NCBI GenBank assembly: GCA_025558095.1
Contig: JAIVFI010000034.1
Span: 434,001-498,000, forward strand
Source: Hyaloraphidium curvatum SAG 235-1
Taxonomy: Eukaryota > Fungi > Monoblepharomycota
DNA: 64,000 nt
Direction: 5' to 3'
The notes under the pieces are model-generated. The model had not been told where the DNA came from and did no database searches. It saw only the letters and a list, made by a program, of their open reading frames with translations. Shown piece after piece: positions 3,901 to 54,271 of this stretch. Position 1 is the stretch's first letter; each line of letters opens with the position of its first letter. Both the position numbers and the translations under genes were made by a program.

Positions 3901-4123
3901 CGTGGAGATGACCGGCGCCGCAATCACCACCCGCGGCACCTTCTTCCCCAAGGGCAAGGAGCCGGACGCTTCCAAGGGCGAGAAGAAGCTGTTCCTGTTT
4001 GTCGAGGGCGAGACGGAGCTGATCGTCGACCACGCGAGGTCCGAGATCCTCAGGGTCATCAAGGAGGCCACGTTAGCAGCCGCCGAGGCAGAGGCGCAGG
4101 GTGGACGCTATTCTGTCGTCTGA
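935..4123 (+). CDS. PRP5: Pre-mRNA-processing DEAD-box RNA helicase Prp5/DDX46
   Basis: RD/RS-rich N-terminus, DPLDAFM motif, [35 protein letters not shown]-terminal [15 protein letters not shown]-like region; three short introns (~1850-1911, ~2580-2631, ~3823-3883). Confidence 0.95.
1070..1140 (+). repeat. 15-bp coding tandem repeat (GAGGAGCGGCCGCGC, encoding EERPR) in the Prp5 N-terminus
   Basis: About 4-5 near-identical units directly visible. Confidence 0.85.
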
Positions 4124-6885: not shown

Positions 6886-8380
6886 ATGTCGTCCTCCCTG
6901 GTGGACACGAAACAGTCGCGGAAACCCGCAAGTGCGTCCGCCGGCCGCCGCCCCCGGCGCGCCTGACCGCCGCGCAGACACCGCGTTCAAGCAGCAGCGG
7001 CTGAAGGCATGGCAGCCCATCCTGACGCCCAAGACAGTGATCCCGACCTTCTTCATCATCGGCACCATCTTCGTGCCGATCGGAATCGGCCTGTACATCG
7101 CGTCCGATAGGGTACGCCCGCCGCCCGGCCGTCCGGGGCCGCCGCATTCGGCCGCCAACGCGTCCCGCGTCCGCAGGTGCAGCAGGTCGTCTTCGACTAC
7201 ACCTACTGCAACTCCTCCTCCCCCACCTTCTCGTCGCCCGTCACGCAGATGCTGTACTTCCCCGACACGCAAATCTGCCGGATCCAGTGGCGCCAGGACC
7301 AGACAATCCCCAGCTCGGTCCTGCTCTACTACCGCCTCACCAACTTCTACCAGAACCACCGCCGATACGTGAAGAGCTACGACCCCAACCAGCTGCAGGG
7401 CGCAAAGATTGAGTCTGCGTCGGGCACCAACGTCAATTGCGCGCCGCTGCAGGGACCCGGCGGCAACCCGCAGTACTATCCGTGCGGGCTGATCGCCAAC
7501 TCGATGTTCAGCGGTGGGTGTCGCTTCGAGGCCCGTTCAGGTTTGTCGCTCACCCCCATTCGATGGACAGACTCGATTGGCAGCCCGCGGCTGGTTAGCA
7601 CGACGGACGCCAACTACCAGGCCTTTGTCGGGCAGCAGTTCACCTTCTCGCAGAACGGCATCGCGTGGCCGTCGGACGCGTCCAAGTACCAGACCTCGCA
7701 GTGGTTCACGGACTGGAGCCCCAGCATCCCCGCGACCTCGGTCGGCGGCGCCACCTGGATCCAGCAGAACCTGCTCCCGCCCCCGGCATGGATCACGGGC
7801 TTCGCCTGGGCCGGCTGGGCCAACGGGTACGACGTCACGCGCGGGCCGGTGCAGTTCGGAAGCTCGGTCGACAACGTGACCAACTCGGGCGGATACCCGG
7901 ACCTGGACACGTGGGAGCGGCTGCAGGTGTGGATGCGGGTGGCTGGGCTGCCGACGTTCCGGAAGCTGTGGGGCCGGAACGACGCGCAGACCATGCCGAG
8001 CGGGACGTGGGAGATCGACATTGGCTTCCGTGGGTCCTTTCGCCGCGCTGCTTCACCTCCGACCCGCTGAATTGCGCCGCGCAGATTTCAACGTGGCCCA
8101 GTTCGGCGGCACCAAGGCCATCGTCATCTCCAACGTCTCGGTGATTGGCGGCAAGAACCCCTTCCTCGGCATCGCCTACATGGTCGTCGGCGCGCTCTGC
8201 TGGGTCCTCGGCATCAGCTTCCTCATCCGCCACATGGTCAAGCCGCGCAAGCTCGGCGACCACTCGTACCTGAGCTGGAACCAGACCCAGGCCCCCGGCG
8301 CGCCGGGCACCGCGCAGCTGCAGGCGCCGCCGAGGCAGAAGCCGGCGGAGCCGATCCCGATGCAGCCTCTGAACGGCTGA
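6886..8380 (+). CDS. CDC50: CDC50/LEM3 family P4-ATPase (flippase) beta subunit
   Basis: [70 protein letters not shown]; four short introns. Confidence 0.95.
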
Positions 8381-47476: not shown

Positions 47477-47768
47477 ATGGATTGTATTTGACTTGGAGCT
47501 GTATGTACGCATTGGGACCAAACGCACGGAACCAGTCTGGTCTGGTCTAGTTTATCCGCCGGCGTCGTACTACATGAGTAACTCGATGCCACTAGGTTTT
47601 CAGAGGCAAACTGATCTACTCGCCCTACTACAACAACCTAATCGGACCGACGGTTGCCCCGTTGAATAGTGGTGTTTTCAAAACAACCGGGACTCTTTGC
47701 AAAAGAAGTTCTATATATCACTACCTATGTAAAGCGAATACCCTTCACGTCTCTATCTCCACCATAAG

Positions 47769-48791
47769 CTAAACAACAACTACCAAATTGCCGAGCTGGA
47801 AGCGCACGTCGATCGTCAGCGTCGTCAGCCCGGTGGTCATGGGGAAGGCGGTTCCGGAATTCTGGCCGATGAAGTCGATGATCAAAGGCTTGATCCTCAG
47901 GTACCGAAAGTGCATCAGAATGGGTATTGCGTCGATGTTTTGAACCGTCCTGGTCGAGCTATGAAGTCAGTAGTAGAGGTCTCGATCGATGATTGCTTAC
48001 GCACTGCCATAGGGCGGGTCCGTTGAAGACGTTCTGGCAGAAGACCTTGATGACCGCCTGTGCAGGCGGAAACCCGGGCGTGCCTTGATGTCCAGGTATG
48101 AGCAGTATGGCAAGGATGTGGGGCGCCAGTCCGTTCATGATGGCATTGCCAAGCGCCCGGAACTCCCTGTTGACCATGTTGGATGTATCACCGTTGGCGA
48201 TCTGGAAGTAGCGTATCCCGATTGCATTCCATGGTTCATCCCCATGTTGATCACATTCATTTTCTTAACTGCCGGACCAACGGGCTGCGCCATCAGGATG
48301 TTTCCGTGGAGCACCCTATTCATTGCGTGCAACGAACCAGGGAGGCATTGGCAGCCACCAAAAAGGGTTGTATGCTGGATTGGAGACCGCCAGAGAAGGG
48401 ATGAGGGCCCACTGCAAGGGGCCGAAGACGCCAAAGTATTGAAGAAAGTTGTGCACAGTCCCGTGAACGGTGGGATCGTAGACCAGGGCGCCCCAACGCA
48501 CCCGAATGAAGTGGTCTATGGAAAGAAAATCCCGAGGACCGGCCAATGCCAGGGGAAAAGCCATGTGCCGGCCTCAAGAAACCGGGGGTGCAGAGGATTG
48601 ACGGGATTCGCGCGGGGATCCGTGCTCGAGCCGGGTGAGCCGCGAACCCCAGTCGCGACAACCTCATTCACACAATTCCTGCAGTTCGTTGGTGAGCTCG
48701 ACTCCGGATTGCCTCCGACGTAGTTGCTGACCTTCTTTCTTTCAGACGTCGGTAGTTTCGCGCCCCGCTTCGCTCTCCGCCGGCATGGCAT
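47769..48791 (-). pseudogene. Degenerate unknown ORF divergent from the Fanzor gene
   Basis: Coding-like fragments in shifting frames (RDFLSIDHFIRVRWG; MVNREFRALGNAIMNG...VIKVFCQNVFN; VQNIDAIPILMHFRYLRIKPLIIDF...) and one GTAAGC..CTGAC..TAG intron (~47959-48000). Confidence 0.35.
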
Positions 48792-48983
48792 TCGGGTGCG
48801 GAGTCCGAATCCGCCTCGCCGGTCGCATGGTCATCCACTGCACCAGCCGGTTCTAGGTGGGCCGCAAGTACACGGCCATTGCCTCCGACCTCGACCCCTG
48901 CCCAAGTCACCGCATCGAGGTCCGTTCCCTCGACCGTCGACGTGTATCAATCGAGCTCTAACATTGTTTGCAACAGCAGTGAC

Positions 48984-51900
48984 ATGGGGTCGAAACGAGG
49001 GCGAACATCGGACAAGGGGTCGGACAGCGACGATCCCGGCGAAGGGTCTTCGGCACACCCACCTGCTCCCCGGAAGCGCGCCAACCAAGCCGGCGAGTCC
49101 GAGGTCGTCGATGCTGCAGCTCAGCTTCCCGTGGCCGTGGCCGTGCCGCCCAACTCCGAGTCCGACGACACGGAGCTCGCATCGTCGCTGGTGGCCGCCG
49201 TGTCGCAGAATGACACCGAGTCGGACGACTCCCGGCCCAAGGAGGCGATTCCCCAGAAGCGGCCCCGCAAGGACGGCGACAAGGGCAAGGAGCAGGCCGA
49301 ACCCGTCCCGTCGTCTCCGAAAGGCCCCGAGCCCAAGAAGGCGAAGAAGAAGGGCTACGATGCCGCCGCCGCCGCTGCCCAGGCGGCCCTGGCGCCCGAA
49401 CATTCTGCCCACCTCGAGCAAGCCAACGTGCCCACCGGTTGCCCCGCCCTGCTTTGCGGAAACACTGATCATTGGGATGCCGGTCACGGCGACGGGAGCG
49501 GCTGCCAGTTGTTTCCCTGCGGGAGCCTCTACCACAACACCAAGGAACATCTGAAGCGGCCCGATCCCCGCATGCCTTTCATGTGCCCGCACTGCGACCC
49601 GCTCAACACGCTCGACCACGACGAAGGTTTTCACTCGGTCTGCGGCACGTGTGGCGAGCGTGACCATGGCGACATCGCCCACGCGCACCCTTGCGACGCC
49701 CTCGTGTGTACCGGGAGGATCTGGGCGTCGCGTTCAAAGGAGGAACTGTGGGAGATGGTCGCAAATGGCTTCCTGTCCGAGAACGTGCTGTACTCGTGGT
49801 TCCCCCTGATCTCGTACGAGGACCACGTGCTCGAGCACAAGCATACCTTCGTTTCCGTGGAGGAGCCCAACGGTTGCCGGCCTTTCCTCGTTCACTGCGG
49901 CTCGCTGGGCCACACTCGCGCGGCGCACGACGGGGTAGAGCCTCTGTACTGTTCGCAGTGCGGATCGTTTGAGCACCGGGCCAAGGAGCACGTGCACTAC
50001 ATGTCTGCGTGCCACACGAGCGCCAACGGCTGCGGACAAAGGGGTCACTCGAAGGTTACCGCCGGGGCCTGCGTGCTCAACATCAACGATCTGAAGAAGC
50101 TCACGCCCAAGGAGGCGCTGGACGAGCTCATGGGCCCGCAGTCTGCCCAGAGGACCGTTGTCATGGCGTTCCAAAAGTTCCTGAGGTACGGGGACCGGAC
50201 GGCGCGGGAACCCGCGAGCCCAGAGGAGGAACTAGCTGCCACGCTCTACGAGGTCATCGAGGATGCCATCGGGCGGTTCACGAAGCTCTCGTTCGAGATG
50301 TCTCTGTTCATGGACCTCTTCTTCAAGTACGTGCGCGACTTGCGGCTACTGGGAGGGAACCTTCGGTACCCTCACCTGGACATGAGCCTCGGCCTGAACG
50401 CCTTCTTCGCCGTGGCGGCGCCACTCGACGGCGACGAAGACCACGCCGATACTCTGGTGCCGCTTCTGAACACGTTCCGCGACACGGAATGGCTGGGCTG
50501 CGTCAAACGAGCTGCTCGTCACGGCTACAAGCGGACGTCACGCGTTGGCCTCGACCAGATCATGCGGACCGCGTCACAAGGCTACGTGACGGCTGCCATG
50601 AACTCGGCGAAGGAAAACCTGCACGATCGGGTGCGCGCGTGGACGATCTGCAGGCTGCGCATCCCGCTGCAACCACGGCCATCGCGACCCACTTTGTCAA
50701 CAGCCTGAAGTTCTGGGATCCGAGGGAGCACCCCGCCAACACGAACCGGCCCTTCACGCTGCCAAACAACGAGCTCTACGACAAGGTCATGACCGACCCG
50801 CTGCTCCTGGAGATCTGCCGCGACGTCTACACCGAGCTGCGCGACGACCTGCTCAAGGGTCTCTACCTCAACCCGTACTGGGTCGCGTACCACTGGCAGA
50901 GGTTCTTCGACGTCCTGTTCCGCATCCAGCGGGAGCACGAGGCGCTGCGCAAGAAGCTGGTGCAGTGGACGGAGAACTTGAGCAAGAGCGAGAGGAAGTT
51001 CGCTCTCCGCAACTTTCCCTACAACCACAAGCTCGTGAAGCCCTTCAACGTCCTCCCGCGCTTCTCGACCGAAGCCAAGCACATCCTCATCGACCGCATC
51101 GCTCTTCACCAGCTCATCCAGGTGGCGCAGCGGCGGCTCGGCCAGGAGCCCACCTCGCTGGCCGACTACCTCGCCGCGGAAGCCGAGGATCCGGAGCACT
51201 GGTGGCGCATGTTCTTCCGGCCGGAGAAGGTCAACACCGGCGGCGCCGAGAATCCATCGAGGCACTTCGACTACTCCTTCTCCACCGATGCCGTGAAGGC
51301 CTCGATCACGGTTCGCGTGCGGAAGCCGGCAGAGGAGCAGCCCGGCACGTCGTTCTCCGACATCAAGATCCCCGGCATGTCCGTTGCCGGGCTCGACCCC
51401 GGCAGCACAGCCATCCTCACGATTTCGACGGGGCTCTCGACGCCGGGGGACGACAAGCACCACGGCCACAGCAAAGCCGTCAGCGTCTCCGCGGGCGAGT
51501 ACTACCACCTCGCCCGGTACAAGAACAACACGTGGAAAGCAAACCAGCGCAAGAAGCGGCACCCGTCCATCCTTGAGATCGAGCGCGACACGCCCGTGGC
51601 CAAGGCCTCCACGGTCGCTCACACCAAGCTGTACATCCACCACTGTCTCAAGCACCTCTCCACGATCGTCGGCTTCTACGGGACAAAGGTCCACCGGCGG
51701 TCTCGGTTCGACCGGTACATCGGCAAGCACACCGCGCAGGAAGCCGTTGCCGAGAAGGTCATCAAGGGCTGCGGCGTCGAAGCGGAGCGCCTTATACTTG
51801 CGTTCGGCAAGGCCAGGTTCCGTCACAACATGCGCGGCGGCGTCACGACTCCAGGGTCGGCACTGGCGTGGCTGAAGCGCATCCTGCGCCGCCGCGGCGT

Positions 51901-52239
51901 CACGGTCACCGAGGACGTGGAGGAAGACATGACGTCGCAGATCTGCGCGGCGTGCTGGGAAAAGGTCGGCAAACAACACCCGAAGAACGGGCACTACCAG
52001 ATCAAGGATTGCAGAAATCCGGATTGTTTGATCAAGTGCTGGAATCGGTTCGTTGCCTTAGGTTCTCGTCACGCAGCTCCTGACACTTCGGCCGCAGGGA
52101 CGTCATGGCTGCCACCAACATCCGCACCATTGCCTTGTCGGAGATCCTCCACGGAGGCAGGCCTCCCGTGTTCTTCTCGACGCGGAGGGCCAACTTCGAG
52201 GGACGCGATCCGGCGAGCGCGGGTGTCATCGTCAACTAG
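48984..52239 (+). CDS. Fanzor1-like (TnpB-derived) RNA-guided RuvC endonuclease, ~1,070 aa, one frame disruption near 50630-50670 and one intron 52048-52097
   Basis: FSTDAVKASI, RuvC-I VAGLDPG (D 51395-97), SVSAGEYY, ILAFGKARF, RuvC-II VEEDMTSQICAAC (E 51923-25), CRNPDC, spliced RuvC-III WNRDVMAATNI, terminal GRPPVF. Confidence 0.9.
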
Positions 52240-52520
52240 GGTCTTTCGGCCCTCCAACGACTCCTGCGTGTGTGACGATCCCGCTCAACGGTCAACTCTT
52301 GCGATCTTGAGTTCGCTCTCGAAAGCAAGGGTCGTGGCCGATCCGATCCCGACTGAGCTATGCAATGATGTTTTGATCGGGCGGGGCATCTATCCGCGGG
52401 CTCGGTCCGGGCGATCAGTGATACGGAGAAGACCCCGGCGGGTGGGAGCAGGAACCAAAACAATGGAGGTAGGGTTCATTGCTCCGGAGTCGGCGTAACC
52501 AATCGCCGTAGTACGAGCAG
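52240..52520 (+). ncRNA. Putative Fanzor omegaRNA scaffold region
   Basis: Series of stem-loops directly 3' of the Fanzor stop, the position where omegaRNAs occur; exact ends unknown. Confidence 0.55.
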
Positions 52521-52685
52521 GATGCCGGGAGGTATTGTGGTTGGCTTAGTTTTTGGTTTCTTAGAGGCTCCCGTTCATTCTGTAAACGGTACTAGAAACT
52601 TTTTCGATCACGCTACTTAAGCGCCGTGACACCGACACCGACCGTAAACAACTTAACAAAGAACCTTCATCTCTTTCTCGCAGCC

Positions 52686-54271
52686 ATGATCAGCGCGCTG
52701 GCGTTCCTGCCGCGCGGGGCGGCTGCCGAGAAGCCGTCCGTGTATCGGCCGAGCGCCGAAGACCTCGAGAAGCTGCGCGAGCTCGCCGGCGAGGAGGTCG
52801 AGGCCGCCCGCAGCGACCTCGAGCGGGCGATGGGCGAGCCCGGCGACGGCATGGAGGACGACTCGGACGCCGAGTCCGGCAGCGACAGCGGGGACAACAA
52901 AAAAAAGATCTCCCGCAAGGCAGTGCCGCCGGGCAAGGCGAACCCGGAGGACCTCAGCGAGTACCACCTGGAAGATTACGACGACGGCGAGGGCCCCGCG
53001 GACCCCGCCTCCCGGCTTTTCTCCAACGTTTCTGCCCTTGCGGTTCCTGGGCCGGACCCGTACCTGGACACTGAGGCTGCGGACAGCGACGACGACGAGC
53101 TGGTGGTCCTGGCTTCTGACGGCGTAATCATCGCCGCCCGCACCGAGGACGAAGTGAGCACCGTCGAAGTGCTGGTTTACGAGAGGGAAGAGGGCAATGC
53201 TTATGTGAGGAACGACTGGATGGTGACGGGAATGCCGCTGTGCCTCGAATGGATGGACTTTGGTCCCGGTGCCGAAAAGGGTGGGTGTTACTTGGTAGCG
53301 CCGTGGAATCTCCACCAACATTACCTTCTTATTCATTCATAGGTTCCTACATTGCCGTCGGGTCTTTCGAGTCGACCATTGACGTGTGGTCTCTGGACGT
53401 GGTCGACGCCATGCTCCCCACCTTCGTGATCGGCACCGCGCTCCCGAAGAAGACCGGCAAGAAGAAGTCCAAGCTCGTCCAAAAATCCGACGTCCAGCAC
53501 ACGGGCGCCGTCGTTTCTCTAGCGTGGAACCGGAACGCTCGGCATCTGCTCGCTTCCGGGTCCGCCGACACGACCGTGAAGCTCTGGGACCTCAATTCGC
53601 CGTCTGCCGCGGTGGCGAGCTACGCGCACCACACTGCGCCCGTTCAGGCGCTGCAGTGGCATCCTACGGACGCACCGCTGCTCGTCTCTGCCTCGCACGA
53701 CAAGACCGCGCGCGTGATCGACTCCCGTGCCCCCGCTTCCGGCCTTTCCTTCGACCTCCCCGCCGATGCCGAGGCTGCGCGCTGGCTTCCTTCAGGCGAC
53801 CGCTTCTTAGTTGCCTGCGAGGACGGTGCGGTGTTGTGCTTCGACCCGCGTTCGTCGCAGCGCGTGTGGACTCTGCAGGCCCACGAGGGTGCCTGCTCCG
53901 GCCTCGACGCCTCGCCCACATTCCCTGGGCTTGTCGTGACGGGCGGCGCAGACCGGACTTGCAAGGTCTGGGACATGCGGGAGAAGCCCCGCATGCTGGC
54001 CAGCAGGGAGTTCCAGGCCGGCCGCATCTTCTCGGCACAGCTGGCGCCGGATGCCGCCTGCGTCGCGGTCGGTGGGACTGGCGGCAAGGTGGTCCTGTGG
54101 GATCTTGGCGAAGTCGACTCCGTTCGGCGCGCCTGGGAAGGGGTCGAGGGAGAAGGCGAGAACAGGCGGGAGGTTGTGGTTGTGGAGGAAGGCGGCAGCG
54201 GGGACGAGGCGGACAGCGACGACGAGGAAGGAGAGAACGCGGGTAGTGATGGGGAGATGGAGGAAGATTGA
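52686..54271 (+). CDS. PWP1: Periodic tryptophan protein 1 (WD40, ribosome biogenesis)
   Basis: MISALAFLPRG, LSEYHLEDYD, DPYL, RTEDEVS, PLCLEW, IDVWSLDVVD, HTGAVVSLAWN, LASGSADTTVKLWDL; intron 53281-53342. Confidence 0.93.

Follow-up and report, generated by a model that had tools for sequence, protein, structure and literature searches.

A candidate omegaRNA scaffold at the right end of a Fanzor1 element in Hyaloraphidium curvatum

The Fanzor1 gene and its element

The window analyzed here, a 64,000-nt stretch of contig JAIVFI010000034.1 from Hyaloraphidium curvatum SAG 235-1, contains an element of ~4.9 kb (47667-52594) with TA at both ends and imperfect inverted ends, which carries a Fanzor1 gene. 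The omegaRNA candidate lies in the 3' part of this element. Fanzors are eukaryotic RNA-guided nucleases and are under development as compact genome editors; to our knowledge, their guide RNAs are known from a handful of species. None of the papers searched links Fanzor with Hyaloraphidium.

The core exon of the gene (50690-52047, + strand) encodes the REC/WED region, the DPG of RuvC-I, the glutamate of RuvC-II and the zinc finger up to CWNR. It is followed by a 50-nt spliceosomal GT..AG intron (52048-52097, +), located between WNR and D of the RuvC-III motif, and by the last exon (52098-52239, +; DVMAATNI...VN), which ends in the TAG stop codon at 52237-52239 and encodes a C-terminus with homologous counterparts in relatives. 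The motifs GLDPGS, E-DMTSQI-CAAC (E-x6-CxxC) and, across the intron, WNR followed by DVMAATNI were recognized in the translation. The intron is real, because RNA contigs from two runs, X1 and X2, splice 52048 to GACGTCATG, and because a paralog (L025) and a metagenomic relative (P0154), in which it is absent from the RuvC-III site, read straight through. An apparent intron elsewhere in the paralog lies between ..HYRVK and DCKNPNC (~L025 7070-7137), seemingly at the same position as one in the relative L048. A coding reading of the region 3' of the gene was rejected: the long ORF at 50009-52498 is an unspliced read-through frame, the stop codons of the relatives precede the region, and their indels there are not in threes.

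The Fanzor exons were used as separate queries and not as one spliced model. The Fanzor exon alone had no matches among Pfam and PDB sequences, and a word-based protein search returned matches solely from its own genome. A total of 705 relatives were found by an exhaustive HMM search, the profile combining the window exon with another copy and the paralog. Relatives have Pfam PF07282 on record, and the window exon itself is without it. A profile of 92 relatives matched the solved Fanzor1 proteins SpuFz1 (8gkh, E 1.9e-71), GtFz1 (2.4e-62) and PpFz1 (9.6e-49). The AF2 model of the core of P0154, a 44%-identical relative, reached a pLDDT of 89 and had SpuFz1 as its best match with a TM score of 0.57-0.58; AF2 without an alignment was uninformative (pLDDT 34). 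The protein thus has the RuvC D-E-D residues, the DPG, a shifted glutamate six residues before CxxC and a profile and fold like those of SpuFz1. Since both the profile of the relatives and the modelled fold match SpuFz1, the gene 5' of the candidate omegaRNA is a Fanzor1, and its designation as a Fanzor in the earlier note is borne out.

In the window copy the gene is disrupted. A six-copy alignment shows a frameshifting 61-bp deletion at 50671-50672 (+) in this copy only, which is also without 74 bp at 48875, near the 5' part of the gene. Both stretches are present in all five other copies, and the copies on contigs C31 and C1 at least retain long open frames. The RNA contigs show the undeleted form at 50671 and come from other copies.

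Six copies of the element were found by a DNA search of the genome with window positions 52100-52700, with similarity stopping at ~52594-52598. Longer comparisons showed them to be 97-98% identical from ~47667-47750 through 52594. In the right-end alignment the copies are alike as far as ...AACGGTACTA at 52594 and share nothing from 52595 on, with the exception of the C1 copy (L010), where similarity stops at ~52585. The sharp loss of conservation that the earlier note expected at the element end is therefore present, and the candidate region does lie on the strand of the gene and abut the right end of the transposon, as had been suggested. The interval proposed there, ending at 52520, was too short, as the conserved element continues to 52594.

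The left end (47667-47696, +), where copy similarity starts, is an imperfect TIR preceded by ..A-TA, and 20 of its first 30 bases are shared with the right end read in reverse complement. The right-end TIR occupies 52565-52594 (+), with TA at 52593-52594; the right ends of all relatives finish in ...ACTA. TA borders both element ends, and the 5' flanks of the copies read AATA, TATA, GATA, GATA and GATA, with an A before the left TA in every readable copy. Being without a transposase gene, the element is of the non-autonomous TIR type. P0157, a 911-aa relative, adjoins a gene with HTH_23 and DDE_3 (Tc1/mariner-type) domains, which may represent the family of transposases by which these TA-flanked elements are moved. 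Gene-less 'ghost' copies with the element ends were sought in the genome, and just the six copies were found. A degenerate seventh copy (L026; contig C2, ~590.4-591.8 kb), with 83-92% protein identity and in-frame stops, stops at the position corresponding to window 52084 and has neither the right end nor the 3' region. The paralog L025 (2043-7584, contig C14) is a single-copy Fanzor1 element with 42% protein identity and a TIR matching at 27 of 30 positions.

The gene 3' of the window element encodes a WD40 protein, with an mRNA start near 52658; its identification as PWP1 is compatible with the data. Members of the proposed Fanzor1 clade tend to sit just 5' of a host gene that runs in the same direction. 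In three cases from different lineages, the element stops 3-93 nt before the start codon of such a gene: the window element before the WD40 gene (interval 52595-52690), L025 before an ankyrin-like ORF (7585-7645) and L044 before a short-chain-dehydrogenase-like ORF (4019-4030). This placement could be due to chance, target preference or selection.

Helices in the interval from stop codon to right end

The earlier note listed six stems in the proposed interval, and all of them are present, ACTCTTGC/GCAAGGGT pairing with one G.U. Five of the six appear in the minimum free energy (MFE) fold, from which CCGATC/GATCGG is absent. The energy of 52239-52520 is -111.5 kcal/mol; its dinucleotide shuffles average -105.6 +/- 5.5 (z -1.07), and 29 of the 200 equal it in folding. 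For the full interval 52237-52594, stop codon to right end, z is -1.59, with 5 of 100 shuffles folding as well. The corresponding z values on the minus strand are -0.10 and -0.83. The comparison with shuffled sequence, put forward as a check, thus came close to failing, neither value being significant, and the six hairpins as a set are not clearly beyond chance by folding energy. An Rfam scan of 51500-52800 gave two chance-level matches (E 3.6 and 9.5), neither within the region of interest. Among the six copies, 24 columns vary; three changes preserve wobble or Watson-Crick pairs and a few break pairs of the MFE fold, and these substitutions are too few to test structure.

A comparison between lineages was more informative about structure. 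DNA 3' of related Fanzor genes was compared from the window, the L025 paralog and metagenomic or transcript contigs (L044/L045; L049/L050, with ~80% protein identity to L044; L046; L047; L048), together with the more distant L053 and L051, giving a total of just 7-8 lineages. Independent folds of seven lineages, with 25-45% protein identity where measured, gave the same helices in the same order.

Hairpin A (GGGUC-UUUC-GGCCC, 52239-52252, +) overlaps the stop codon by one base and is a candidate for the first stem-loop. Its consensus, GGGUC-N4-5-GRYCC followed by UC, was found in the window, L025, L046, L047 and L048. In these five lineages it lies 0-12 nt from the stop codon, which in L047 falls inside the loop, and has a stem of 5-6 bp with pair probability >=0.97; variation is limited to exchanges of U.G with U-A and of G-C with G.U. 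A different hairpin takes its place in L053. A scan of metagenome contigs with an 18-base DNA pattern of hairpin A and its linker met 30 unrelated contigs with no Fanzor nearby, which is about the number expected by chance.

The conserved linker after hairpin A (CCA-N-UGAC-like) provides the 5' strand of the helix P1 (CGACUCC, 52258-52264, +), which pairs with GGAGUCG at 52486-52492 (+), just before hairpin B. Equivalent strands are UGUCUCGGCG/CGCCGGGACG in L025, UGACUUCCG/UGGAGGUCG in L044, ACCUCCGGC/GCCGGGGGU in L047 and AUCUC/GGGAU in L048. P1 is present in the MFE folds of all seven lineages folded separately, with pair probabilities of 0.90-1.00. Sequence anchors guided a manual alignment of the helices, so that all pairing counts given here carry a selection bias: in P1, 46 of 48 cells are canonical, compared with 35-60% when the partner strand is slid, and three of the five scored columns show compensatory changes, with a fourth if the helix is taken as seven pairs long. 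When partners were swapped among lineages, the observed 30 of 30 was not reached in any of 265 swaps (maximum 27).

P1 encloses a variable domain (52265-52485, +) that differs greatly in length between lineages and contains the listed stems at 52295-52332, 52343-52380 and 52445-52485. GGAGCA/UGCUCC is the sole hairpin of this domain that recurs, in L046. The stems at 52295-52380 are uninformative, since they lie in a lineage-specific insert that is 100% identical across the six copies. The listed stems retained in relatives are thus that at 52239-52252 (five lineages), GGAGCA/TGCTCC (L046) and CGGCG/CGCCG (all seven).

The last of these is hairpin B (CGGCG-loop-CGCCG, 52491-52508, +), the outer pairs of which compete with the last pairs of P1. 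It directly follows P1 in all seven lineages with differing stem sequences of 4-9 bp and pair probability >=0.64. All 24 of its cells are canonical, whereas 265 partner swaps gave 16.8 on average and 20 at most.

A third helix, P3, is formed by UAGUAC (52509-52514, +) and the last six bases of the element (GUACUA, 52589-52594), that is, by the tip of the right-end TIR. Its layout is one G, then U-R-G-U..., pairing with the terminal ...ACUA. The equivalents are UGGUGCGCGG/CCGCGCACUA in L044 (10 bp), UGGUGC/GCACUA in L048 (6 bp), UGGUA/UACUA in L025 (5+5 bp around a bulge) and UAGUAAGA/UUUUACUA in L053 (an 8-bp terminal hairpin). Two lineages, L046 and L050, show P3 weakly or not at all, and just one of its columns is compensatory. 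The domain that it encloses (52515-52588, +) has two CUUAG motifs. A pair of CUUAG-like motifs with a U-rich spacer (window 52540-52566) also occurs near the right ends of L025, L044 and L046; the two pair with each other in L044, and in the window and L025 such pairing would have a central U-U mismatch. These motifs may be halves of an RNA stem or DNA binding sites.

Hairpin A, P1, hairpin B and P3 were thus found in five to seven lineages, with the TIR and TSD in the stem next to the predicted guide, as described for Fanzor1 reRNAs (PMC10711439). In characterized Fanzor1 omegaRNAs the first stem-loop has 7 bp. Among the paired cells, 24 of 149 are G.U and none is non-canonical; the 24 would be A.C mismatches on the other strand, in agreement with RNA of the + strand rather than a DNA hairpin or the opposite strand. 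The MFE of the region is -140 kcal/mol on the + strand vs -111 on the - strand. L053 has a compact form, with three hairpins in the 83 nt from its stop codon to the ...UACUA end.

P1 and hairpin B thus show compensatory changes in the hand alignment. Automatic methods did not retrieve this structure: a covariance model of one lineage (R1, from the 3' domain of the L044 family) found no homologous match in the others. A MAFFT alignment of the 3' regions was poor, and RNAalifold gave no consensus structure on it. A protein-pattern scan of JGI metagenome contigs for further members confirmed none.

Transcription and the omegaRNA reading

Run X1 represents RNA, because two GT..AG introns are spliced out of its contig for the neighbouring WD40 gene. 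X1 contigs cover the whole Fanzor element, including 52240-52594, and some of them carry on past 52594/52595 for 221-255 nt, into flanks belonging to other copies; RNA ends and abundance are not resolvable from contigs. One of these flanks belongs to the C2 copy L007. Transcripts thus do read through the right end of the element, as a guide derived from the flank would require. At a loose end at 52594, RNA contigs run into ACGAACGAAGCATC..., which matches none of the six assembled flanks and suggests a further copy or a strain difference. In run X2, a biofilm metatranscriptome from an environmental oligo-dT library, a correctly spliced fragment of window 51915-52048 was found with 99% identity.

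The region lies on the strand of the nuclease gene at the 3' end of the element, between the stop codon at 52237-52239 and the end of similarity at 52594 with its TIR and TA. This same-strand position at the right end, the compensatory structure, the read-through transcription and the Fanzor1 gene upstream fit an omegaRNA with a guide read from the flank. We therefore consider it likely that 52237/52239-52594 (+) is the scaffold template of a Fanzor1 omegaRNA (reRNA). The spacer had been expected within ~52510-52620. The part up to 52594 belongs to the scaffold and cannot hold the guide, because P3 and its enclosed domain fill 52509-52594; solely the sequence from 52595 onward can serve. Published Fanzor1 RNAs reach 14-15 nt past the right end or TSD (PMC10432273; PMC10711439), and by analogy the guide would start at 52595 and be ~15 nt long (predicted at 52595-52610, +). 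It differs in every copy, because each has a different flank. The predicted TAM, taken from the 5' flanks of the copies, is (N)ATA.

On this basis a mechanism can be proposed. Transcription of the Fanzor gene would continue through the 3' UTR and over the right end into host DNA. The transcript would fold into hairpin A (52239-52252) beside the stop codon, P1 (52258-52264 with 52486-52492) around the lineage-specific insert, and then hairpin B (52491-52508). P3 would close the fold by pairing the TIR tip and TA (52589-52594) with 52509-52514, leaving ~15 nt of flank from 52595 as the guide. Processing would yield a discrete RNA with a defined 5' end, and once bound to this RNA, Fanzor1 would cut DNA matching the flank beside a 5' (N)ATA, which is the element's own empty insertion site. 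As in TnpB systems, such cutting would help the element to be retained or copied. The RNA of the window copy would be used by the protein of intact copies, such as those on contigs C31 and C1, because its own nuclease gene carries the frameshift. Five consecutive T residues are present at window 52600-52604, 6 nt past the right end, and are not found in the other copies; if the omegaRNA is made by Pol III, this run would truncate the guide of the window copy.

The structured stretch measures 355 nt, compared with 75-150 nt including the guide in characterized Fanzor1 omegaRNAs (PMC11423790). The Hyaloraphidium form looks like a three-hairpin core with large insertions in P1 (220 nt) and P3 (74 nt). 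We tentatively propose that the whole 355 nt is one scaffold, more than twice the size of the largest characterized one, with domains inserted in a core that would consist of the stop-adjacent stem-loop, hairpin B and the TIR-closing stem. It would belong to an undescribed clade with long N-terminal extensions, made up of Hyaloraphidium and uncultured relatives.

Given the excess length, the mature omegaRNA may instead be the last ~105 nt alone (52491-52594, hairpin B and the P3 domain), a variant within the omegaRNA reading that is plausible though less likely than not. Hairpin A and P1 would then be parts of the mRNA 3' UTR that serve processing or insulate translation from the RNA module. 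Such an RNA would agree with the 75-150 nt of characterized Fanzor1 omegaRNAs, in which the guide is preceded by a first stem-loop and a variable part (PMC11423790; PMC10432273), and the position of hairpin A, fixed at 0-12 nt from the stop, is what a translation- or processing-linked signal might show. However, all lineages, with compensatory changes, have the 5' motif tied through P1 to the base of hairpin B, and this suggests that the two form a single folded unit; in L053 the stop-adjacent hairpin is just ~50 nt from the terminal hairpin, so that both fit within the size of a whole omegaRNA.

It is improbable that the region is a structured 3' UTR joined to subterminal transposon DNA with no guide role, in which mRNA stability, export or 3'-end formation would account for the helices, and transposase binding alone for the terminus. 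The region does lie within a polyadenylated-type transcript assembly, and the TIR is constrained as DNA. Yet the last helix includes the TIR and TA and extends exactly to the element's final base, as in published Fanzor1 RNAs (PMC10711439), transcripts run through into the flank, and the members of the protein's family that were examined have such RNAs (20 loci in ten organisms; PMC10432273). That the hairpins are chance stems in G+C-rich DNA is very improbable and already disfavoured: the z values of -1.07 and -1.59 and the chance-level number of pattern matches would agree with it, but the same helices recur at homologous positions in seven divergent lineages with compensatory changes. The feature at 52239-52594 is real and probably functional, and an omegaRNA scaffold remains our preferred reading.

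An omegaRNA template is an expected part of Fanzor elements; this candidate is new for the organism and the clade, and unusually long. For a new fungal Fanzor1 clade, the locus supplies predictions of the scaffold, the guide start and the TAM ((N)ATA), and the comparison between lineages gives evidence on which helices are under selection. The natural series from the ~83-nt compact to the ~355-nt expanded form could reveal which parts of Fanzor1 RNAs are dispensable.

Comparison with known Fanzor and TnpB RNAs

The omegaRNA of ISDra2 TnpB follows the same logic as proposed here, with a right-end scaffold, a guide derived from the flank and a TAM at the target site. Unlike the present case, ISDra2 is a bacterial, ssDNA-transposing IS200/IS605 element, and its scaffold is pseudoknotted and overlaps the tnpB ORF extensively.

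The closest solved structure to the Hyaloraphidium protein is SpuFz1, from the Spu-1 element of Spizellomyces punctatus (Saito et al. 2023, PMC10432273). As in Hyaloraphidium, the host is a chytrid-grade fungus and the element is non-autonomous, carries Fanzor1 only and has inverted ends of ~30 nt. SpuFz1 has the TAM CATA, a CA being conserved ahead of the left end (PMC10432273), and the 5' flanks here read (N)ATA. The scaffold of SpuFz1 has 75 nt and two stem-loops (PMC10432273), whereas the conserved structured stretch in Hyaloraphidium has 355 nt, a long-range helix and two inserted domains. The Hyaloraphidium protein differs further by its long N-terminal extension and the intron in its gene, and no 'ghost' copies were found in this genome. 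The window copy, with a dead nuclease gene and an intact RNA module, is nevertheless like the 'ghost' elements of S. punctatus.

Fanzor1 reRNAs are also known from SfAV and other insect viruses (Yoon et al. 2023, PMC10711439); their fold takes in the TIR and TSD beside the guide, as here. These RNAs extend ~15 nt past the TSD and form three stems without a pseudoknot (PMC10711439), resembling the compact L053. They belong to another host group and another transposon family and are known from small-RNA sequencing (PMC10711439), whereas the evidence here comes from contigs. The GtFz1 omegaRNA (Xu et al. 2024, PMC11423790), with 150 nt and four stem-loops, is less than half the length of the 355-nt stretch. 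It also has additional stem-loops that separate the first one from the guide, and it starts near or overlapping the end of the ORF, as in the Hyaloraphidium candidate. The compact form of L053 is close in size to the characterized Fanzor1 RNAs of 75-150 nt and to the 75-nt scaffold of SpuFz1 (PMC11423790; PMC10432273).
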